Assembly (NCBI GenBank): GCA_964234715.1
Contig: OZ174277.1
Direction: 5' to 3' (one strand)
Source of the DNA: Podarcis melisellensis
Taxonomy: Eukaryota
Length of the DNA stretch: 64,000 nucleotides
Shown in pieces: positions 4,108 through 38,120 of this stretch (the first letter of the stretch is position 1; each line of letters begins with the position of its first letter). The notes beneath the pieces were generated by a model that saw only the letters and a program-made list of their open reading frames with translations, was not told the DNA's origin and ran no database searches. The position numbers and the translations under genes are program-made.

Positions 4108-5174
4108 CTGCAAAGAGAGTTTTATTGCAAATATTTGAAGTACTGCATGATATATTAATTACCAAGCCATTTTTATATAGGGACATTTTTAGCACTGGCA
4201 AAAGATATATTCAATAATTCATGAATTTTATAGATGCAAAAGCCAGAATTTTAGGCTAAAAGCTTAATATGATCATAAAAATTCTATGCATCCATGCACT
4301 GGTAAGCACTGGCTATCAACATGGATTTAAAGCCTCTTGGTTTTATCAATACCAACATGTATCTAGCATGGATATCCAAAAGCAATTATAATAGTTTTCC
4401 CACCCTCAAGTCTGTTTAGAAGATGCTTCCAAAGCCAACATCTTGTTTATGATTCCCAGTTCACATGTAAACAAACAAGATTGGCTTGGCCTGTTGGTTG
4501 TTGGGTTGGCATTGCAAACAGACTTGGGACATCGGGAAATAGGGTTCTTCTATACAGCGACAACTGGTGAAGCAATTTTTAAACCCTCCCTTCCTTTCCC
4601 ACATAATATTGATGTTTATTGCAATAATGTGAGTCCAAATTAACACACTGTAGCCTTGGAATGCCTCTTTGCTCCAAATCAAATCCTGCCAACAGGAGGT
4701 CCTTTCATGGCTTCAGGAAAAGGTTGCCAGGCAGGAATGCTCTCCTCTCCTATATTTTATAATTTTGAAATGACTGACAAAACAGTCCTTGAGGCAGATT
4801 TACAAAAAGCCAGGCAATACAAAGCAAGGTCTTCCACAACCTTGTTGTCTGTGATGGAGAATGAGTAGGTGGTCACTCCCTTTCTTCCACTCATGCCATT
4901 TTTCTTAAAGTAATCTGGAAAGCTATTATTCCCTTCCCCCTTCAAATAAGTTGAACTCGGGGAAAGGAGATTACCTTTTTCGGAGGCACAAATTTTCAAC
5001 AACAAAGAATGTGTCACAATTAGGAAAATGATCTCAATGATTGTCATCCAGATGGGATGGGGGAGGATCCGGCTTCTCAGACAGGAGAGCAGTGGACCAG
5101 AATCCAAAACCAGAGGCAAGCTGGCGGTGAGTAGCTAAATACACAGTTCGAAATTAGGGGAGGCAGGTCCAATG

Positions 5175-7497: not shown

Positions 7498-7653
7498 CTT
7501 AACAGCTCTCCCTGGCTCCGCAGCCTCCCATGCTTGCTTCATAGCTTTGATCTCATCTGCTCTCTCAGTGTCTTTCCTCAAATCCAGTGCTTCTATTTCA
7601 TTTTGTTCAATGACTAGACGTAAGATCCAGGAGGGTTTGTTAGGATCAGATTG
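7498..7653 (-). CDS. ADGB: ADGB exon 31
   Basis: QSDPNKPSWILRLV...KDTERADEIKAMKQAWEAAEPGRAVK. Confidence 0.96.
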
Positions 7654-8929
7654 CTAGAAATGAAATGCACAAAGCAAAATCAGAAGAGCACATATTGCTT
7701 TGAAATTCTCAAATGAATGAAAGAGCCAATTCATTATCGAGAAGCACTGTCTGTGATAGACTGTTATTGTCAAAGAATGCCAAATGCCACCCTCTGGTTT
7801 CATTTGACATATGTGTGCTCAACTTTGCAAGGGAACCTGCAAGAGATACCATCCCCAGAACTAGTCTGTTTCCCCCATACATGCAGCAAAGGCTGCTTTC
7901 AGTCAATATCTTCTTTAGCAGAGCAGTAATGGGTCAATGGAGGGTTGGATTTGAAGTGAACCCCAATGTGAGTTGTTTTAAAACCTGGTTTCTAAACTGC
8001 GGTTCAGGAGTGCCCTTATTCATGGCTAGCACATGACTGCCAAGAGAAATTTGTAAAAATGGGGTAATTGCTGGGGAGGAAAGAGAGCATGTGATTCTGC
8101 TACCCAAACTATGAGTAGTCTTGGAGTAGCACTATGTTTATCATGGGTGCTAATCATTTGCAGCACATCAATGGCATGAAAGGAGGGAGAAAAAACTCTT
8201 TTTTCATTTACAGATGCTTGCTTCCGTGTCCAGTCACCTGAAGATGGTTGTTATTTGCCATAGCTAAGATACCAAGTTGCCTAGGGGGCTCTTGTGGATA
8301 ATTAGTATTACTAGGCTTATCTAGGCCATCACCATGTAAAATGAAGAAATGTGGACAGAAACAAGTTAATGAAAATAAACAAGAGAGGCCACTTGAGTTG
8401 ATCCAAGTAGATAGGCAGAAGAGAACACCCTAAAAAGTGTGGCAATGTATTTCCACCCTCAAGTGGAGGTGTAGAGGAAGGGGAATCAAAAACTATTAAG
8501 GGTCATTAAATAAAGGGTCATTAAAATAAAGATGATGATAATTATGATAGTGGAAGATATGAATGAAATGTGTATGAGGGGCCGAACAAGTTGTGAAACC
8601 TCTCAGTTGTCACAACTGTGACATTAGTGATGCAAATTACAACTGATATTAATATTTCGTTGCTCCAGCAAATTCAAATAGAATTTGAATTCAATTCAAT
8701 TTGCATTCCATTCAGTTATACAGGATTTCAAGACAGCTGCCTAGCCAGGCAGAGCTGAAATATAGCACAATACAGTGTGTTTCAGCCATAGCACTAGAGA
8801 GTGAACATATTAAAATTTTTTTACTACTTTCCCTTTCACTCTTGGAAAAATATAGAAGAAATTTACTCTATACACCATCATTCAGAACATTTGAAAATGC
8901 ACTTTATGAACTCGTTTATTTATTATTAC

Positions 8930-9114
8930 CTGTGATTCGGGCCTAACAACAGTTACGGGTTTTTCTTTAGCAGCTTTTTCTGCCTTCTCAGTTGTTTTCT
9001 CCTTCACTTTTCGACCTCCTTTGGAAGAGCCTGCAGATTTTTGTCCTTCCATGTTGCTGTGAATGTCTGGACTTAGGACACTTACACTTTCTTCATGTTT
9101 TTCAGTAGGACGTG
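8930..9114 (-). CDS. ADGB: ADGB exon 30
   Basis: RPTEKHEESVSVLSPDIHSNMEGQKS...RPESQ. Confidence 0.92.
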
Positions 9115-9648
9115 CTGTGTAAATTTCATTGTAGTGTTTATTTATGCTTTCCATTTATGCTTCTGGAGCTACATAATTGTTTGTTACCGAAGAGTTTACT
9201 TTTAGGAAACAGGTCTTAAAAATTATGCACTCTCCCTTATTTATGACAAACTGTTGTAAATTTCACTTTAAAAGTAAAATGTTCTGTCCTAGCTACTTAA
9301 TTTGGACACTAAAATCTACCCTAGATGGCACTGTTGTCTTACATTATGAAATATTAGGATGAGAGATGAAAGCTTATAGAAGTGGTTTTCTATTTTTCCA
9401 TTTACACAATAGCGTTTTTTGGAAATTATCAAGTGACATGTTCTTTTTTTGATGCAGGACTGTATCAGCATCTTTGAATAAAAAATAATTTTAACTACAT
9501 CCAGCATGTCTGCAACTCTCCTTGTCAGCCTCTTTCTGACTCAAAACACTACCACTCAAAACACTCAAAACACTACCACTACTTTTCCAAGTTAATATAA
9601 TGATAGACTTTCAGGAAGTATTTTAAATAAACAAAAAGTAACTTAGAT

Positions 9649-10171
9649 CTTCTTGGGAGAAAAGCAATGACAAACCTAGACAGCATCTTAAAAAGCAGAG
9701 ACATCACCTTGCCAACAAAGGTCTGTATAGTAAAAGCAATGGTTTTCCCAGTAGTGATGTATGGAAGTGAAAGCTGGACCATAAAGAAGGCTGTCCGCCA
9801 AAGAATTGATGCTTTTGAATTATGGTGCTGGAGGAGACTCTTGAGAGTCCCATGGATTGCAAGAAGATCAAACCTATCCATTCTTAATCAGCCCTGAGTG
9901 CTCACTGGAAGGACAGATCGTGAAGCTGAGGCTCAAATACTTTGGCCACCTCATGAGAAGAGAAGACTCCGTGGAAAAGACCCTGACGTTGGGAAAGATG
10001 GAGGGCACAAGGAGAAGGGGACGACAGAGGATGAGATGGTTGGACAGTGTTCTTGAAGGTACCAGCATGAGTTTGACCAAACTGCGGGAGGCAGTGGAAG
10101 ACAGAAGTGCCTGGTGTGCTCTGGTCCATGGGGTCACGAAGAGTCGGACACGACTAAACAACAACAACAAC
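9649..10171 (+). mobile_element. BovB (RTE) LINE, 5'-truncated 3' fragment
   Basis: Peptides MTNLDSILKSRDITLPTKV..KAMVFPVVMYGSESWTIKKA and KLRLKYFGHLMRR..EKTL; frameshift near 9888; (CAA)n tail. Confidence 0.93.
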
Positions 10172-29619: not shown

Positions 29620-30280
29620 CTGCACAGATAAGGGGGGGGGGGAGATTTCCTTAAGTTTACACTCAGAAATGAAAGACTATATTCTACTGGTCAAGTTGAG
29701 AAACATAAACAGGGCAAAATTATCCTAGTAATTTATCACAAAGCAACTTAGCAATACTGTATATGTATACCTGTAACAGCCTAAATCCTCACTGATTGCT
29801 GTGAAGCTGCATGCACTACAAAGGCAAATGCTTTGAAGATAAATGGACTGAACTATTCTTTCTTCTCTTAAAAAGGTAAAGAAAGGGGAGAGATTGAATT
29901 TCTAACTCCCAGAAAGCAGCAGAGTAAGGCAGCCTTCTTTAACCTGGTGCCCTTCCGATATTTTGGAATACAACTCCAATCAGTCCCAGCCAGCAACACT
30001 GTACAAAACATCTGAAAGGTACCAGGTTGGGAAGGGGATGTTTGTCCAGCAACATAAGCACAGATGAACTATCAATACATCAGAAGAAAATTTTCAAAAG
30101 CAGAGAAGCATTTTTTAGAATATACACCAAGACAGCTGCTAAATAATGACTGAATCCAGGACGATTTGTCCATAAAGCGTGTTCTCCATTAACAGAGAGC
30201 ACGTGTTGCGGTTGGGGGAACAGGCCACCTTGCCATGACTAGGCAGTTTTGGAGAAACCTAAGCCTGCTAAAGGGTTAAG

Positions 30281-30339
30281 ATTGGGTACTGGGAATTGAT
30301 TGTAGCCAATTTTAGAGGAGGGGTCAGAGTATATAAATA
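30281..30339 (+). promoter_or_regulatory. Internal Pol II promoter of the YR element (CCAAT boxes plus TATA)
   Basis: ATTGG 30281-30285, CCAAT 30306-30310, TATATAAATA 30330-30339. Confidence 0.6.
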
Positions 30340-31230
30340 TAGAGGACAGACGCTGGGCCTTCCTCTTGGCCGTTTTGCATCGGATCAGGAGCTGCGCTGA
30401 TACGGTTGTATACTGCCTTGCTTTCGATTTCATTGGGCCTAGTTAAGTGGGCTGCCACCCCATCCTTTCCCTGCCTTAATTTTCCCCGTCCCCCTTTCCT
30501 TTTCCCCCTCATCTCTCCTGTGAGTTAATTTTGATTTTCTATTTAGTTTCTTATTATTTTGAAAGCAGGGAGAGCAACCAGTTTAGCCAAGGCTTGAGGG
30601 TGGGCTCCCCCCCCCCCCGCCTTGCGGGCCCTGCCTTCGGGCTGGGGCGCCGGGCTTTCGCCTTAATTACGGAGCGAACGCTGCCGGCTACCCGCGGCTG
30701 TTGAGGCTCGGCTTTGGATCTCTCCCTCTCCCGCTGATAGTGCGCTCGGGTCGGGGCCTAGTGCCGGGGAGACGACGGGGGTTTTGGCGAGTTCCTTGGG
30801 CCTACTGGTGCTCCCGTTGGGCCTAGGAGCCCTCCCCCCCTCCTAAGAAACCGGAGTTTTCTCCCTTACCTTTTTTTTTTTTTTTTTTTTTTGCGGCTTC
30901 CGGCCGCCGCGGCGGGACGGTGTTTTTTCCCGGCCTCTTCCCGTGCCGCGCCACGCCCGCCTCGCAGCGAGTGTCCTTCGGGCCTTTGCGGCTGCGGGGG
31001 CCCTTCTTTTAAATTCTCCGTCCGCAGCTGCCTTTCGGCGCGAGCGGCGGAGCGGCGGAGGAGTGCGGGCGGCCTGACTTGCTGCCGGAGCTCTCTTCCG
31101 GCGGCGGCAGCGTAGCCGGGACGGAGCGTCGGCGCTGGGGGACTGGGCCTCCTTGATTGCCCTGCTTCCCTCTCGCTTAACGTAGCGGGGCCGCGTCCCC
31201 GGGATCGGGTGCGGCTGCCCGCGTTTGCGC

Positions 31231-31450
31231 CCGCCATTTTGGTGCCTCCGTCGTCGTGCTACCGCGCCTGAAGTTTCCCTTGGTGGCTGTTGCCTTCTGG
31301 CTGCGCCACCTGGTGGCCAATTGCGGTTATTGCGGCCTGGGCCACCCGGGGGGCTCCCCCTGGTGGCGCAGTGAAGCACTGCGCCTTATTCCTGGAAGGC
31401 CTGTGGGGCTCTCCGGCGCCCCCTGCTGGTGGCACATAGGCAGTGCAGCC
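31231..31450 (-). promoter_or_regulatory. YY1 motif plus three co-oriented CTCF motifs in the element leader
   Basis: CCGCCATTTT 31231-31240. Minus strand: CCACCAGGTGGCGC (31303-31316), CCACCAGGGGGAGC (31353-31366), CCAGCAGGGGGCGC (31416-31429). Confidence 0.7.
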
Positions 31451-31590
31451 ACAATCGGCTTAATTGTTTCCTAGCTTCTACCGTTTAGTGCAAAGAAATT
31501 AAAAGAATAATAGAATAATTGATATTATTTAAACTGAATACAAATACGATTCTAAAATAAATAATTAAATATACTGTGTATGTTTCTAAT

Positions 31591-31617
31591 TAGATAGATA
31601 GATAGATAGATAGATAG
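31591..31617. repeat. (TAGA)n microsatellite inside the YR element leader
   Basis: Seen directly. Confidence 0.92.
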
Positions 31618-31747
31618 GCTAGACTGCCTGGAACTTCACTTGTGATTGTACTATTCCCTTTAATTATATTCAGCCCCTTGTCTGTGGCCACTAGTGACGC
31701 TTGGCTCTGATAATAATTGACTCTCACTTTGATTCCTAATAGCAGGT

Positions 31748-33277
31748 ATGGCCCCTAAAAAGAAGGTCGCTGCCCGTCCCGGCCCAGCCTCTGGTGCGAA
31801 ACGGCCCATTAGAGGTCCATCGCAGGCGCTTCGCTCTCCCACCCCAAACCAACCGGTGGGACGTGTGCAATCTTTGGTGGACAGTATGGCCGGCGATCCG
31901 GTGGCCTTGTCTCGCTTCGCAGCTGAGATGGATGGTTTTCTTCAACAGTGCTCTGCTCAGCCTTCAACGTCTGGAAGGCGCCCTCCCCCAGTGGTGGCAC
32001 CATTCCCAGCGTCGCCGTCATCTAGTGATGAGGAGAGAGATGGCTCATCATCTAGGGGTTTGATGACTGATTCCCAGTTAGCCCGTCCCCGTGCCTTACC
32101 TGCTGCTCGCGGACGTGCACGGAGACCGCGCCGTTCCTCTGGGAGGGCCGTGGGAAGAAGAGGCCCTTTGGCGTCATCCACCCGCCAAAGTCTCCTCACC
32201 CAACCTTCGGGCGAGGTTGCGTCAGGTTCCGGTATCTCACCTGTTGTTTCTCCTCACTCAGCTCCTGGTACATCTCACCTGAGTCCTGATTCTGAGTCTT
32301 CCATTGAGGACAGTTTGCCGGTTCCTGCCAAGAAGTCTTCAGGCGGTAAGCGTCACCGCAGGAGGTCTTCCCGGAAGCGTGCCAAGCGGAGGAGGGGCGA
32401 CTCATCTTCCTCCTATACTGGTACGTCATCCTCCAGTTCTGATGATGAGTCTAGCGCTTCCAGGGAACTCTATTGGGGTTTTGGTGAATCGGCTGCAGGT
32501 CTTCCTCGGTGGGCTTGGGAGCGTAGGGCCAACACGCATCGGGCAAGGTATGGTGCAGTTCAAGAATGCAAGGATGGTGTGCTGGTACCTGACGTTAAAG
32601 TCTCTACCAATTCCGCCAGAGACATTATCCCAGGTTCGCATTTGTCTACAAAACTGCGGTCCAGAGTTTTGAATGGTCGTTATGTGGACATTTTCAAACT
32701 GGCCCCTCCTTCCGAGGACCAGGAGAAGGGGACTTCAGCGAAGAAGCGCCAGGGTGCCCTAGTTACAGACAGGACTTTCGAACACTGGCTTGATTGTTTC
32801 CAAGTCTTTGCCGGAGTGGTCGTGGCGGCTTATCCTCGGAGATCCCTCCATCTGATAGTTTACTTATCTATTGTTCGCTCCGCTTTCACCAAAGCTGGTG
32901 AGAAGGCTGCGATAAAATATGATGAGAACTTCAGGCGCCGAGCTGCCAAGATTCCTTCAGCTCGATGGGATCGTAAGGATCTAGACGTGTGGACTACCTA
33001 TGTAGCTCCACTCATCGAAAAGAAGGTGTCTGAACCTCAGAAGCAGAGGGCTTTGCCGTTTAGGCCTAGCCGTCGCCTGCCATGCTGGGAGTTTAATAAG
33101 GGTTCCTGTCAGCGCCAAGGGTGCAAGTATGCCCACATGTGTGAAAAATGCAATGGTTCGCATCCGGCTTCCTCGTGTTATGGGAGTAGGCGGCCTTTTC
33201 GTGGAGGAAAAGGGGGTTCTCAGCAACCCCCCAAGCAAAACACCCCTCTCCCTTCCACATCAGGAACAGGAAAATAG
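31748..33277 (+). CDS. Gag-like ORF1 of the YR retrotransposon (509 aa)
   Basis: C-terminal C-x7-C-x4-C-x3-H plus C-x2-C-x3-H-x4-C zinc fingers; Ser/Arg-rich N-half; sits upstream of and overlaps RT. Confidence 0.88.
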   Translation: MAPKKKVAARPGPASGAKRPIRGPSQALRSPTPNQPVGRVQSLVDSMAGDPVALSRFAAEMDGFLQQCSAQPSTSGRRPPPVVAPFPASPSSSDEERDGSSSRGLMTDSQLARPRALPAARGRARRPRRSSGRAVGRRGPLASSTRQSLLTQPSGEVASGSGISPVVSPHSAPGTSHLSPDSESSIEDSLPVPAKKSSGGKRHRRRSSRKRAKRRRGDSSSSYTGTSSSSSDDESSASRELYWGFGESAAGLPRWAWERRANTHRARYGAVQECKDGVLVPDVKVSTNSARDIIPGSHLSTKLRSRVLNGRYVDIFKLAPPSEDQEKGTSAKKRQGALVTDRTFEHWLDCFQVFAGVVVAAYPRRSLHLIVYLSIVRSAFTKAGEKAAIKYDENFRRRAAKIPSARWDRKDLDVWTTYVAPLIEKKVSEPQKQRALPFRPSRRLPCWEFNKGSCQRQGCKYAHMCEKCNGSHPASSCYGSRRPFRGGKGGSQQPPKQNTPLPSTSGTGK

Positions 33278-34883
33278 GGTATTGACCTCCTTGGCTCATT
33301 CCCCTGTTCGTTTGCCGGCCCTACAATTCTGGTTGCAGTCATATCCTAATAGGGTCGCTGCAGGTTACTTGAGTGATGGTTTTTCGGTTGGTTTTCGGAT
33401 TCCGGTAGCCATGCCTCCCGTGGCACGGAATCCTTCTAACCAAAAGTCGGTTCGCGAGCTGCCCGAGGTTGCTCGCAGGAAGATTGCGAAGGAGTTGGCC
33501 ATGCATCGCATGGCTGGTCCTTTTAGTGCCCCTCCCTTCCTCAACTTCCATGTCTCCCCATTGGGTATAGTGCCGAAGAAGGCGCCAGGTGAATTTCGTT
33601 TAATTCATAATTTGTCAAACCCCAGAGGTACCTCAGTCAATGATGTTATTCCTCCGGAGCTCTGCTCCGTGAGGTATGCATCTCTTGATCAAGCAATCAA
33701 GATGATTAGGAAGTTTGGCCTGGGTGCCCTGTTAGCGAAATGTGATATTGAGTCGGCGTTTCGCCTCCTCCCGGTTCATCCGGATGACTTTTGGCTGCTG
33801 GGTTTTCAGTTTGAGGGCAAATTTTACTTTGATAAAGCCATGCCTATGGGCTGTTCTATTGCCTGTGCTGCGTTTGAATCCTTTAGCACCTTTTTGGAGT
33901 GGGCCCTCAAATTTAAAACTGGATTGGGTGGGGTCACTCATTATTTGGATGATTTTTTACTGGCCTCCGCTCATGACACTGGCGATTGTTCGGTGTTGCT
34001 GCACGCCTTTGCTGAACTCACGCAAGAGCTGGGGGTCCCGCTTGCAGCAGAAAAGACGGAGGGCCCATCAACCCAGCTTACTTACTTGGGTATCCTGCTG
34101 GATACAGTTTCCCAGACTTCTAGCTTGCCAATGGACAAGCTGGTAGCCTTGAAGAAAGTCATAGAGGAGCTACTCCCTTTAGAAAAGGTATCTCTTAAAC
34201 AAATCCAGTCATTACTAGGGCACCTAAACTTCGCGTGCAGGGTTGTGGCGCCTGGGCGCCCCTTCTGTTCGCGCCTGGCTCGGCTTACGGTGGGGTTGAG
34301 GGCCCCACACCATCGCGTGCGCCTTTCCAAAGGGGTGAGGACTGATCTTTCCATATGGTTGGAATTCTTGGAGGAATTCAATGGGGTGTCCTTATGGCAA
34401 GACACGCTGAACTTGCGCAATGATTTTCAGGTTCAATCGGACGCTGCAGGTTCCCTGGGCTTCGGCCTTTACTGGAAAGGGCGTTGGTGCGCCGAGCGTT
34501 GGCCGCCTGCGTGGCAGGGGGGAGAGATCACACGGGACCTAACATTTCTCGAGTTTTTTCCCATTGCAGTGGCGGTGCATTTGTGGGTCGAGGAATTCAG
34601 GAACCGTCGTGTCTGCTTCTGGACCGATAACCAGGCGGTGGTGAATGTGCTGGCAAAGCTGTCTTCACGCTCACCCAGGGTGTCGGCCTTATTGCGGGTT
34701 TTCGTGTTGCATTGTTTACGCTATAATATAGTGTTTTCTGCACGTTTTATTCCTGGGGTGTCTAATGAAATTGCTGATGCTCTGTCCCGTTTTCAGATGG
34801 AGCGGTTCAGACTTCTGGTTCCAGAGGCACGGATACGTCCGGAATATTTCCCGGATCATCTCTGGAACCTTGGCAGCAATTAG
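33129..34883 (+). CDS. Reverse transcriptase-RNase H (584 aa ORF)
   Basis: SPLGIVPKK..FRLIHNLS, KCDIESAFR, MPMG, YLDD; RNase H SDAAG / LEFFPI / WTDN / NEIADALSR; no internal stops. Confidence 0.96.
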   Translation: MPTCVKNAMVRIRLPRVMGVGGLFVEEKGVLSNPPSKTPLSLPHQEQENRVLTSLAHSPVRLPALQFWLQSYPNRVAAGYLSDGFSVGFRIPVAMPPVARNPSNQKSVRELPEVARRKIAKELAMHRMAGPFSAPPFLNFHVSPLGIVPKKAPGEFRLIHNLSNPRGTSVNDVIPPELCSVRYASLDQAIKMIRKFGLGALLAKCDIESAFRLLPVHPDDFWLLGFQFEGKFYFDKAMPMGCSIACAAFESFSTFLEWALKFKTGLGGVTHYLDDFLLASAHDTGDCSVLLHAFAELTQELGVPLAAEKTEGPSTQLTYLGILLDTVSQTSSLPMDKLVALKKVIEELLPLEKVSLKQIQSLLGHLNFACRVVAPGRPFCSRLARLTVGLRAPHHRVRLSKGVRTDLSIWLEFLEEFNGVSLWQDTLNLRNDFQVQSDAAGSLGFGLYWKGRWCAERWPPAWQGGEITRDLTFLEFFPIAVAVHLWVEEFRNRRVCFWTDNQAVVNVLAKLSSRSPRVSALLRVFVLHCLRYNIVFSARFIPGVSNEIADALSRFQMERFRLLVPEARIRPEYFPDHLWNLGSN

Positions 34884-34885
34884 TT

Positions 34886-35770
34886 TTGCAGGGAGTAGCG
34901 GCATCTGTTTCCCCTTCTACTCTTAGATCTTATACGAAAGCTTGGTCTGATTTTTTGACGTTTAATTCCCGGCCGGCCAGCGATTTAAGAGGCATCCCGC
35001 CCACCTCTTCAGAGGTGTTAAGTTATTTGGCGCATTTATTTCAGCTGGGGCGTGCTGCAAAAACTATTAAAATACATGCAGCTGCTATAACGTTTTTCTC
35101 TAGAACAGTTTTCGACAAAGACCCCTGTGCGAAGTTTATGGTGCGCAAGGCCCTAGAAGGCTGGGGGAGGCTTCGCCCTTCCCAGCCAGTTTCACGGCGC
35201 CCCATCTCTTTTGACTTGTTGAGTAAGATGCGCAAGAAATTGCGGGAGGTGTGCTGGTCGGCGTACGAGGCTCGCCTTTTCTCAGCTGCCTTTTCTATAG
35301 CCTTTTTCGGAGCCTTGAGAGTGGGTGAGCTGGTATTGGAAGATCTCAGGGATGGCCGTTCCAGGGGCCTTTTGCTACGGGACGTGCAGTTGTTCCCTGC
35401 AGAGCTAAGAATCACAGTTAGGAACTCAAAGACGGATCAGGAGGGTAGGGGTGCTCTCATTCATCTCCCTGCTACGGAAACAGCTGGCCCTTGCCCTGTA
35501 AAGGATGTCGGCAAGTATTTGGCAGTGCGTGCCTCAGGTGATGGGCCTCTGCTTCGGCATGAAAATGGGTTGCCCCTAACGAGACGCCAGTTTGCTCACG
35601 TGATGCGAAAGGCGATTCGGGCCTGTGGTGGCTCGACTGATGGTTTTGCCCCGCATTCTTTTAGGATTGGGGCTGCGACGACGGCTGCCCACTGGGGCTT
35701 GTCGGCCACTAGAATAAAGGATATGGGTCGCTGGAAGTCGAACGCGTTTCGAGGTTATGTCCGTCAATAA
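34886..35770 (+). CDS. Tyrosine recombinase (frame open from 34778; no ATG ahead of the conserved region)
   Basis: Catalytic residues present: GALRVGEL (R), NSKTDQ (K), HSFRIGAAT (HxxR), GRWKSNAFRGY (W, Y). Confidence 0.94.
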   Translation: MQGVAASVSPSTLRSYTKAWSDFLTFNSRPASDLRGIPPTSSEVLSYLAHLFQLGRAAKTIKIHAAAITFFSRTVFDKDPCAKFMVRKALEGWGRLRPSQPVSRRPISFDLLSKMRKKLREVCWSAYEARLFSAAFSIAFFGALRVGELVLEDLRDGRSRGLLLRDVQLFPAELRITVRNSKTDQEGRGALIHLPATETAGPCPVKDVGKYLAVRASGDGPLLRHENGLPLTRRQFAHVMRKAIRACGGSTDGFAPHSFRIGAATTAAHWGLSATRIKDMGRWKSNAFRGYVRQ

Positions 35771-36371
35771 TTTTGGTTACTTACAGTGTCGTTTTTTGTA
35801 TATCTTAGGTCTGGAGGCTGTCCGCATCTGGCTGGTGGGGCACAGCATCGTCCATTGGGCTGGTGTTGCAGCACAACAGTCCGGACTGGGTCCAGATCTT
35901 GGCTTCCCTCCACATGTTCAGCTATCGTGGCTGTCCAGACGGGGAATGCGTTGGCCGGAGTTCCTGCCACGGATCCGTAATCAGTTGCGTTTGGAAGGGC
36001 CCCCAGCGGCTGTGGTGGTACAGCTGGGTGAGAACGACCTGGTATCCACGGACTGTCTTTCACTTCGTGCTGCAATTTTGGGTGACCTGGAGACGTTGCG
36101 GGCATGGGTGCCGTCAGCAAAAATATTTTGGTCTAAGCTGTTGCAACGTCGCATTTGGTTGGGCAGTCGTCGCCCAGCAGCCACAGAAAGGGCCAGGAAA
36201 CGCGTCAATGCAGAGGTGGCAAAGAAAGTTGTTGAGCTGGGTGGTGACGTGATTTCCCATCCAGGAATTAAGTTCCAGGCGGCATCACTCTTTAGGGCCG
36301 ATGGTGTGCATCTTTCAGCCTCAGGGAATGAGGTTTGGCTGGGTGCAGTGGTGGCCAAGCTGAGGGCTTGA
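35757..36371 (+). CDS. SGNH/GDSL-type hydrolase
   Basis: Block I LVGHS, block II RRG, block III LGEND, block V DGVH. Confidence 0.9.
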   Translation: MSVNNFGYLQCRFLYILGLEAVRIWLVGHSIVHWAGVAAQQSGLGPDLGFPPHVQLSWLSRRGMRWPEFLPRIRNQLRLEGPPAAVVVQLGENDLVSTDCLSLRAAILGDLETLRAWVPSAKIFWSKLLQRRIWLGSRRPAATERARKRVNAEVAKKVVELGGDVISHPGIKFQAASLFRADGVHLSASGNEVWLGAVVAKLRA

Positions 36372-36379
36372 TTGGGATG

Positions 36380-36719
36380 GTGAGTGGTTTGGCGGGGAGC
36401 TGTGGGCTCCATGGCGGTTAGGCATTGGTTAAAGTGGTGCTTGGAGGGGTAAGTGCCTACCCCTCCAAATGATGCGGAGGGAATTCCGTTAAAGGAATCC
36501 AGGGGCTTGCCATTCTTTTGTCCTTGTTCATGGCGTTGGACTTGGGCCGTGCAAGCCCCACAGGAACATGAGGGTGAGAAGTGTTAGACTGTTGCCCGGC
36601 TTCACTTTCTCACCCAATACTTGTTTCCCCACACTGGCTTCCGTTGGTGTCCGGTATGCCAGCTCTGTCCCTGAGGGCATGGACAGATAGTCATAACCAA
36701 TGCCTACGCAACCACTCAC
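36380..36719 (+). ncRNA. Predicted multi-stem structured RNA in the 3' UTR of the YR element
   Basis: Perfect 10-bp and 13-bp long-range stems enclosing six internal stems or hairpins (see findings). Confidence 0.65.
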
Positions 36720-36731
36720 ATTTTGTACTTG

Positions 36732-36737
36732 AATAAA
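36732..36737 (+). terminator. Poly(A) signal of the YR element
   Basis: AATAAA 13 nt after the structured domain, followed by a GT/T-rich tract at about 36775-36800. Confidence 0.6.
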
Positions 36738-38120
36738 GTTGTGGCCAAAATTATGCCAAAAACCCAAACAAAAATTGATGTGTGAAGTGTGAATTTTTTG
36801 GGGGTGGCATTGTGGGACTCAACACGCAACCACTTGAAACAGGACCCCCAAGCCAACATATTGCTTGCATATTGAAGATTTCATACATCTTCAAAAAGAA
36901 GAAATAAATTATTTGAAGACTGTGAATTGAAATGAAGGTTGTGAAGCTGTGAGCCTTTTAAACCCAATTCACAAAAATGAAAACATAACCATTATGCTTC
37001 ACCTCTAGAGGGCTCTCTAGGTTAGCCCTGAAGCATGCTGGCAACAAATGCTTCTCTGTTTTACCTAATCTCTAGTAAAGAAGTTACAGGATACAGGGCT
37101 GTCAATGCACATCCTTGAAACTATCTTATATACCATATTTTAAAATAATTTGGGTTTTTTTTGTTTTTAAGAGACAAGCCCAACTGAAGTTCTGAAAGCA
37201 TTGTGCTCCAGGAATCCAATCTGTGCTAACTCTGATAAGAAGGGAGCTGAACAACATTTCCCAGATCAATATGACAACCTGAATTTAGTTAACTGGCTTT
37301 TGCAATTCCCTAGTGTTTGGTGCAGGTTTTGGCTCAAAAAGTATTAAAATACATTTTTAAATGTGTATTTTGAGAGAAAGCAAGTTAAGAAACGCGGATT
37401 TTGACAGAAAAGGCCTATTTAATACAGCCCCCCTAAAAAATACAGGTTAATGTGGAGATGCAATAAATGTAATTAAAAGTGAACATAAGAAAAAGTGACA
37501 CAGAACAGAAATAAACAACCATCCATCCCTAATGACGGTAGGTTACTGCTATGTGATGTTTCTGTAGTTATATGATAACACAATGTGAAATGTTAATACA
37601 CATGCTCTTTTGAGAGAGAGAAGCACTCACGTACTATGTGCATGTTTTGTCAAAGGTCATGAAGCATTAAAAGAGATTAGGTATTATTAAGAGGGCTTCA
37701 GAGAACACAGAGCTTTAGCATTTGGGAGTGTGACACAGGATTGGTTCACATGTAAACCAAACCATGGTTTAGCATAGTTTTCCCCAAACTGAGGCTCTTT
37801 AAATGTATTGGACTACAATCCTATCACCCCCCCCCCCGTAAGCAAAGTCAATGGTCAGAGATTATGTCAGCTATAGTCCAAAATTATTGGAGGGAAATAC
37901 TAGTTTAATGTGATGCAATATCAGAAATTCCTTTTTACCAACTGCTTATTTCTCTGGCAAGTTTTCATTGCTCTTCTCCCCCTATAATTTTGCATTGTAA
38001 GACACCTTGGAACTAGCTATTTATAGAATTTTTACTTCATTTATAACTAAATAACTGAATGAATTAATAAATATTTTCCTATTGAATACAGCATTCATTA
38101 TTCACAATCATATTATTTAC

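Follow-up and report, generated by a model that had tools for sequence, protein, structure and literature searches.

A conserved fold as the probable core of the B terminal repeat in a Ngaro-like retrotransposon of lacertid lizards

The stretch of DNA analysed here, a window of 64,000 nucleotides (nt) from contig OZ174277.1 of the lizard Podarcis melisellensis (assembly GCA_964234715.1), carries on its plus strand a Ngaro-like tyrosine-recombinase (YR) retrotransposon of the order DIRS, of a kind found in lacertid lizards (positions 30176–36829; all features of the window given below are on the plus strand). A preliminary description had singled out a highly structured segment of about 340 nt at 36380–36719, just behind the last open reading frame (ORF) of this element, as a dedicated cis-acting module. 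This segment very probably represents the folded core of the element's B terminal repeat, together with a short extension that belongs to the B1 context, i.e. to one of the two sequence contexts in which B occurs. The element type and the B repeat are already known; judged by the literature searched, the conserved fold appears to be new, and it is outside Rfam.

All four ORFs of the window element are open. ORF1 (31748–33277; 509 amino acids) has no Pfam match and is taken as gag-like by its position. It is followed by a reverse transcriptase (RT) ORF (33129–34883; Pfam RVT_1, E = 5.6e-12), a YR ORF (34886–35770) with matches to Phage_int_SAM_4 and Phage_integrase that both lie slightly under the Pfam curated cut-offs, and, as the last ORF, an SGNH/GDSL hydrolase ORF (35757–36371, stop codon 36369–36371) that matches Lipase_GDSL_2. 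An RT combined with a YR instead of a DDE integrase, an SGNH ORF (an optional feature) behind the YR ORF and no Pfam match to a methyltransferase domain in any of the element ORFs are the marks of a Ngaro-like element, and the setting as first described, a YR retrotransposon ending in an SGNH ORF, is borne out by these matches. An SGNH ORF is also known from Xenopus Ngaro elements (PMC9210276). Protein matches to the SGNH ORF product came from squamates only—Podarcis muralis, P. lilfordi, Lacerta agilis and Phrynocephalus, in addition to Logan contigs—with a best identity of 83% and with lacertid lizards as the nearest relatives. The loci encoding these homologues were compared with the window by blastn, and all relatives referred to below come from two squamate families, lacertids and agamids.

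Complete relatives in Podarcis and Lacerta exhibit the layout A1–ORFs–B1–A2–spacer–B2, with A corresponding to window positions 30176–30387 and B to 36412–36829. Such split repeats are present in six elements (L001, L002, L003, L004, L013 and L015), within each of which A1 and A2 are 100% identical over 208–226 nt and B1 and B2 are 100% identical over 365–434 nt. Split direct repeats were reportedly described for Ngaro elements by Goodwin and Poulter in 2004. Split direct repeats of this layout, with an SGNH ORF after the recombinase, define Ngaro (PMC9210276; PMC8547959), and the B repeat described there shares with the lizard elements the ORF set (ORF1 taken as gag-like, RT, YR and SGNH), the repeat layout and the position. 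There are differences, however: B of the Xenopus element DIRS-53_XT has 152 nt rather than 365–434 nt, and, unlike in the described Ngaro layout, the lizard elements have a unique spacer of 165–180 nt between A2 and B2 (L001 9820–9995; L002 9287–9466; L013 9298–9479; L004 12764–12928; L015 9446–9623), which is 88% conserved across families, i.e. more than the ORFs.

The window copy itself consists of A1...B only. It starts with AGCGTGTTCTCC at 30176, where its A repeat (30176–30387) matches both A1 and A2 of L001, L002, L004 and L013, and it ends with ...ACACGCAA at 36829, where its single B (36412–36829), which matches B1 and B2 of the relatives, gives way to unrelated flanking DNA without A2, spacer or B2. 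The window is free of any N; no second copy of the B sequence and no terminal repeats were found within it, and the repeat nature of B is seen only against copies from outside. L014 is a second single-B copy (A1 at 2946, B at 9143–9598). Recombination between B1 and B2, with loss of everything from A2 to B2, would leave exactly such copies, and so would integration of a one-unit circle; which of the two occurred cannot be told. A study of Cafeteria elements likewise found isolated AB repeats and suggested them to be recombination products. Lacking the internal B1|A2 junction that the classical model uses, the window copy could presumably not restore its own ends.

The minimum free energy fold of 36380–36719 calculated with ViennaRNA predicts a junction of seven hairpin arms. 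A stem of 13–14 bp (P1) closes this junction, and another stem of 10 bp (P0) clamps it from outside. The two outer stems can be read directly from the sequence exactly where they had been placed: P0 pairs GTGAGTGGTT (36380–36389) with AACCACTCAC (36710–36719), and P1 pairs TAGGCATTGGTTA (36419–36431) with TAACCAATGCCTA (36694–36706) in 13 of 13 positions. The inner hairpins can be read from the sequence as well, and the calculated fold recovers six of the seven, P2 (TTGGAGGGGTA / TACCCCTCCAA, 36441–36468), P4 with a nested hairpin (GGGGCTTGC / GCAAGCCCC, 36502–36559), P5 (36562–36629, with an outer GGAACA / TGTTTC and GGGTGAGAAGTG / CACTTTCTCACCC), P6 (CTGGC / GCCAG, 36634–36662) and P7 (TCTGTCC / GGACAGA, 36664–36687) among them. 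One inner hairpin has to be replaced: the GNRA-looped GCGGAG-GGAA-TTCCGT (36474–36489) is broken in L002, where GAAAAA takes the place of its 5′ arm, and the conserved hairpin, for which there is covariation, is the overlapping P3 (36480–36500), in which GGA-TTCC (36480–36487) pairs with GGAATCC (36494–36500) around a conserved GUUAAA loop. Between P0 and P1 lies a further small hairpin, P0a (GGAGCT-GTG-GGCTCC, 36396–36410), which is confined to the B1 context and does not occur upstream of B2. At −153.1 kcal/mol, the fold is clearly more stable than dinucleotide-shuffled controls (−122.9 ± 5.9 kcal/mol; z = −5.1), none of 100 shuffles being as good, and the opposite strand reaches −146.7 kcal/mol (z = −7.1).

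Since B extends over 36412–36829, the junction closed by P1 (36419–36706) falls wholly within B, as do the 3′ arm of P0, the poly(A) signal and the end of the element. The stretch 36380–36411 with the 5′ arm of P0 and the P0a hairpin lies just outside. What had been taken for a dedicated module is indeed a conserved structured cis element, as its covariation indicates, yet not a free-standing module of the 3′ untranslated region, but the core of the duplicated B. As had been supposed, it belongs to no named RNA family: in an Rfam scan nothing came near a gathering threshold, with SCARNA21 as the best match (17–19 bits against a threshold of 60) and nothing else at E < 1. No tRNA was detected in the domain with ARAGORN, nor any similarity to 7SL or 5S RNA.

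An important question is whether this fold is maintained in relatives. For six B1-context copies, which include the Lacerta family (ORF DNA identity about 67–73%), RNAalifold yielded a consensus of 109 pairs that matches the stems first described except for the GNRA hairpin. A covariance model built from this six-copy alignment was used for a wider search, which gave full-length matches in three distant Podarcis families (L005, L006 and L015, with SGNH proteins 44–47% identical to that of the window), and for a 14-row alignment. In the latter—which is fitted to the model and therefore favours structure, and in which the B1 row of an element cannot count as independent of its B2 row—93.5% of the cells are paired (shuffles 83.6%, controls with slid partners 37–50%), both partners have changed in 48 of the 109 pairs (20.4 ± 3.0 in shuffles and 5–11 in slid controls), and the covariation score is 0.234 (shuffles 0.098, slid controls 0.025–0.068), with every long helix contributing. 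An alignment of the distant families by MAFFT only misaligned the interior, and with its bias so stated the model-based alignment was preferred. Comparison of the copies shows a conserved fold inside the terminal repeat that is evidently under selection for pairing within a single strand, and the structured character ascribed to this segment holds as far as families whose SGNH protein is about 47% identical, as well as against shuffled controls.

The changes are distributed over the whole architecture. In P0 (helix 1 of the model alignment), 8 of 10 pairs have changed on both sides, and in MAFFT columns that are unambiguous by eye GTGAGTGGTT / AACCACTCAC is replaced by GGTATTGGC / GCCAATACC in L005, L006 and L015. 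The GAGC/GCUC stem of P0a is invariant in 10 sequences, with its closing pair being CG in four, GC in two and UA in one. P1 (helix 4) is almost invariant across most families; its core GGCATTGG / CCAATGCC has become GGCACTGG / CCAGTGCC in L015, a compensatory change from U-A to C-G that is likewise seen in unambiguous MAFFT columns, and its innermost pair varies in four families between U-A, A-U and C-G (model alignment) and G-C (L007, by eye). Reading the P1 arms (AACCAATGCC / GGCATTGGTT) as CCAAT boxes was rejected on account of the compensatory CCAGT / CACTGG pair in L015. P2, P3, P6 and P7 are present in the model alignment as helices 5, 6, 12 and 13; P3 shows a change from U-A to G-C in L005, with U-A to G-C and G.U variants across L005 and L006. 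Changes on both sides affect 10 of 17 pairs in P4 (helices 7–8) and 16 of 24 in P5 (helices 9–11). An agamid copy whose SGNH protein is 38% identical retains the closing stem GGCATTGGG / CCCAATGCC, and distant copies, most of them decayed, fold modestly better than their shuffles (z = −1.4, −2.9 and −2.4). A scan of metagenomes for P1 arms at the correct spacing gave no match.

The repeat that contains this fold stands out also by its degree of conservation. Between the window and Podarcis copies, the structured part of B is 92–94% identical and the tail of B 93–98%, compared with 77–87% for the four ORFs and a 5′ untranslated region that can hardly be aligned beyond L001. B is either the slowest-evolving part of the element or else has been exchanged between families. 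Where the exact repeat begins is of particular interest: the edge reads TGGCG|GTTAGG in the family of the window and G|GTTAGG in the divergent L015, and thus lies 0–5 nt before the first pair of P1; in the window family it can be placed only within six bases because the B1 and B2 contexts share these. B itself starts with TGGCGG, and the bases that follow pair with the 3′ arm of the element's own P1. Upstream of the edge, B1-context and B2-context sequences differ in every family. Boundaries of B in L005, L006 and L007 cannot be used since split repeats were not detectable there, whereas L015 did have them. In five Logan contigs from short-read assemblies (L008–L012; SGNH identity 60–63%) only the first arms were recovered, since all of them break no more than 77 nt past the SGNH stop codon, near the start of B, which is the behaviour expected of an assembler at a repeat edge.

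Downstream of the fold, B carries what looks like a complete polyadenylation unit. An AATAAA signal (36732–36737) lies 12 nt past the fold inside B and is followed by a conserved GTTGTGGCC, an arrangement found 12–25 nt after the fold in every family examined; further on, a GT/T-rich stretch (36776–36808), with similar U/GU-rich runs in L004, L005 and L015, may serve as downstream polyadenylation element. Judged by these signals, element RNAs would end about 35–40 nt after the fold and lack the last approximately 75 nt of B. At the other end, A contains a CCAAT box (30306–30310) and a TATA box (TATATAAATA, 30330–30339) that is conserved in six families; the conserved end of A (CCTCTTGGCCGTTTTGCATCGGATC) follows these two boxes at a distance of about 25–55 nt. 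Transcription would then start around 30358–30368, i.e. about 25–30 nt before the end of A, and transcripts would lack most of A. These presumptive start and poly(A) sites agree with the classical model, according to which the ends that the transcript lacks are restored from the internal B1|A2 junction. An interaction between the two ends of the transcript did not exceed chance: RNAduplex gave −70.6 kcal/mol for 30355–30460 against 36372–36760, with mononucleotide shuffles averaging −76.4 kcal/mol.

In relatives from the family of the window, B and A meet in AACACGC-AAA-GCGTGTT, an inverted repeat of 7 bp, and the 3′ end of the window element (AACACGCAA, 36821–36829) is a candidate half-site of a recombinase core. 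AA stands directly 5′ of A1 in every insertion examined (L001–L004, L013–L015 and the window, 30174–30176), with elements ending in ...CAA; the B|A junction is plausibly a recombinase core with an AA overlap. These ends recall the TTT ends reported for DIRS-like elements.

What could a conserved fold at the edge of a terminal repeat be good for? Of all retroelement orders, that of the YR retrotransposons (DIRS, Ngaro, PAT and VIPER) is the least understood in its replication, with primer, initiation site and cis-acting RNA signals all unknown and a 3′ hairpin suggested for DIRS-1 only (PMC7192593); the preliminary description was correct in calling their priming unexplained. A role in priming, packaging or end processing, as proposed there, is plausible, and it gains one new support from the repeat boundary at the foot of the closing stem. 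The analogies drawn there to retron msr/msd and to hepadnaviral epsilon are loose ones. Our preferred, albeit tentative, explanation, which may well prove wrong, is that the fold in the B repeat serves as a cis-acting platform for reverse transcription; slightly less secure still is the specific proposal that RT would start or switch template at the foot of P1. As the element's own polyadenylation unit follows only 12 nt downstream, every transcript of the element would have the fold at its 3′ end. A single-stranded, probably plus-sense RNA fold would be recognized by the element's RT or its ribonucleoprotein, and minus-strand cDNA synthesis would start at the foot of P1 or would switch template there between B2 and B1, with the primer end being provided by fold-back after cleavage, by a de novo start or by protein priming. 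The terminal B would thereby be rebuilt from the internal B in each replication cycle, i.e. re-copied from one template. Such rebuilding would explain both the start of the exact repeat at the foot of P1 and the slower evolution of B compared with the ORFs, and with re-copying one would expect B1 and B2 to be 100% identical, the repeat edge to lie where it does and B to be strongly constrained. That the fold is the initiation and strand-transfer element of YR retrotransposons, with the event at the foot of P1, whether by fold-back of the RNA or by structure-guided de novo or protein priming, defining the 5′ edge of B, is rather doubtful; if true, this edge would be set in a manner similar to the edges of long terminal repeats, which are set by primer-binding site and polypurine tract. 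Self-priming from a tail helix in the B2 context, in which AAGTTGTG just past the AATAAA of B pairs with CACAACTT at the spacer end, is disfavoured, as it would place the repeat edge about 7–15 nt further upstream than observed.

Several observations speak against this platform for reverse transcription. For a 3′-OH to be paired at the foot of P1, the RNA would have to be cut about 50 nt short of its expected poly(A) site—and Rfam reveals no known ribozyme motif in the domain—or else a de novo or protein-primed start would be required. The coincidence of repeat edge and stem foot is seen in two families, one of which allows placement to a 6-nt interval only, and the high conservation of B could stem from recombination between families rather than from selection. 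The covariation counts derive from an alignment fitted to the model; when the window's own fold was imposed on the Lacerta copy by MAFFT only, 80 of 112 pairs were kept and 32 broken, and 11 pairs had changed on both sides (slid controls 1–8). As regards the strand, the z-score is better still for the minus than for the plus strand, and one-sided variants, which produce G.U at 20 pairs and A.C at 16, do not tell an RNA fold from a cDNA fold. The plus strand has an energy advantage of 8–17 kcal/mol in six of six copies, which may merely reflect its richness in G and U. Finally, it is from consensus signals in the sequence that the start of transcription, the poly(A) site and the relative use of B1 and B2 are all deduced.

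A possible, if on balance improbable, alternative is that the fold acts post-transcriptionally as an mRNA element, either in export or stability of the unspliced polycistronic RNA or in the choice between the identical poly(A) signals of B1 and B2. In every family the domain is located between the last ORF and the conserved AATAAA, and the greater stability of the plus-strand fold in all six copies would suit an RNA function. Moreover, the two contexts differ in a way that could determine poly(A) choice, B1 being equipped with the strong P0 clamp and P0a, B2 with the predicted pairing between CACAACTT at the end of the spacer and AAGTTGTG (found for the window family and for L015). This pairing covers the B2 signal, however, whereas it is the B1 signal that would need to be bypassed. 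An mRNA element also leaves unexplained why the exact repeat starts at the foot of P1 and why the domain has to reside inside a terminal repeat, and known export elements do not resemble it either in sequence or by Rfam. In the L015 family, the 3′ end of the spacer also provides a second copy of the P0 5′ arm, with a weaker one in the window family.

It is unlikely that the domain operates primarily at the level of DNA, where a folded minus-strand cDNA might bring the ends together for the formation of circles, or the arms might be accessory sites of the recombinase, similar to those in phage attP. That folding is no worse for the minus strand (z = −7.1) than for the plus strand and that A.C variants are nearly as frequent as G.U would be in line with this idea, as would the amplification of DIRS-1 via linear single-stranded cDNA that has been reported (PMC7192593). 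In addition, the sequences of the P1 and P0 arms vary unusually little, and the end of B, 110 nt further on, is the half-site that forms the 7-bp inverted repeat with the start of A. The compensatory change of P1 in L015 argues against a strictly sequence-specific protein site, however, and covariation in all inner arms points to selection on single-strand pairing, so that duplex binding sites cannot be the whole story; nothing indicates that the recombinase binds at B.

A trans-acting RNA appears very unlikely. The A2 promoter might drive transcription of the spacer and B2 into a polyadenylated non-coding RNA of about 0.55 kb, which could be used as primer, guide or decoy for the element's proteins; there is 100% identity between A2 and A1 with its conserved TATA and CCAAT boxes about 25–55 nt before the end of A, the spacer is conserved at 88%, more than the ORFs, and in the predicted fold of an A2–B2 RNA the domain is closed by the spacer–tail helix. 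This RNA is purely inferred, though, the classical model, in which A2 and B1 are mere templates for end repair, explains the same layout, and the window copy lacks A2, spacer and B2. Scarcely credible, and already contradicted, is the absence of any functional structure, i.e. a chance GC-rich palindromic stretch or a nested miniature inverted-repeat transposable element or short interspersed element, to which a solo B-like copy in L003 and the low z-scores of distant decayed copies (−1.4 to −2.9) might point, since the location of the domain within the element is constant, two copies of it exist as B1 and B2, its conservation exceeds that of the ORFs and its covariation is strong, with no second copy in the window and no similarity to tRNA, 7SL or 5S RNA.

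Returning to the fold as a platform for reverse transcription, there are partial parallels in other retroelements. RT recognizes structures in the 3′ untranslated regions of R2 and of long interspersed elements of the stringent type such as UnaL2, and the Mauriceville retroplasmid has a tRNA-like 3′ end. Like these, the B fold is a conserved folded RNA near a 3′ end, to which the RT of the element could be recruited in cis and by which the start of the cDNA could be fixed; unlike the lizard elements, however, they use target-primed or de novo initiation and have neither terminal repeats nor a recombinase, and the B fold resembles them neither in sequence nor by Rfam. Hepadnaviral epsilon, a single bulged stem-loop of about 60 nt that serves protein priming, and retroviral R-U5 are likewise structures in a terminally repeated genomic RNA that occur in two copies with different flanks; in contrast to these, no tRNA primer-binding site is evident in the lizard elements, and the B copies do not occupy both ends of the RNA, since only one of them is at the 3′ end and the other is internal. 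Retroviral constitutive transport elements and hepadnaviral post-transcriptional regulatory elements likewise follow the last ORF and precede the poly(A) signal in an unspliced retroelement RNA, but show no similarity to the B fold in sequence or shape and do not define a repeat. Within the YR order itself, a 3′-terminal hairpin of the DIRS-1 mRNA (about 14 nt, positions 4792–4805) was reportedly proposed as a possible self-primer by Poulter and Goodwin (cited in PMC7192593). The B fold is similar in being a structure at the 3′ end of a YR retroelement transcript in an order without a known primer; it differs in being a 340-nt multi-helix junction from a different superfamily that is supported by covariation. 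Conserved secondary structure in any Ngaro repeat was not described in the literature searched, which excludes most subscription journals and with them the original Ngaro papers.

Overall, an element of about 340 nt that is supported by covariation is now defined inside a terminal repeat, and the coincidence of repeat edge and stem foot translates into a specific prediction for the site of cDNA start or template switching, which natural and apparently young copies in Podarcis and Lacerta allow to be tested. It is in making the priming question of the YR order testable that we see a value above the average. Should the mechanism turn out to be wrong, a new family of structured RNA or DNA within a known class of repeats would remain, and the covariance model could be used to annotate B repeats of squamate Ngaro elements.

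Some further features of these elements were observed. In L015, an internally deleted Ngaro copy (7642–9988), in which A1 is fused to the last third of the YR ORF and B1–A2–spacer–B2 is perfect, may be a non-autonomous derivative. The solo B-like copy of L003 (15857–16307, minus strand) is about 73% identical to B of the window, has a decayed P1 5′ arm and is not accompanied by ORFs. The A2–B2 spacer contains CTGATTGGCTGG, which is Y-box-like. In the window, the 5′ untranslated region (30420–31747) forms a CpG-rich block with a GC content of up to 0.69 that is hardly conserved between families and includes a 23-nt poly-T run (30870–30893) as well as a (GATA)n microsatellite (about 31590–31617), and directly before the ATG of ORF1 there is a sequence resembling a splice acceptor (tcctaatagcag|GTATGG).

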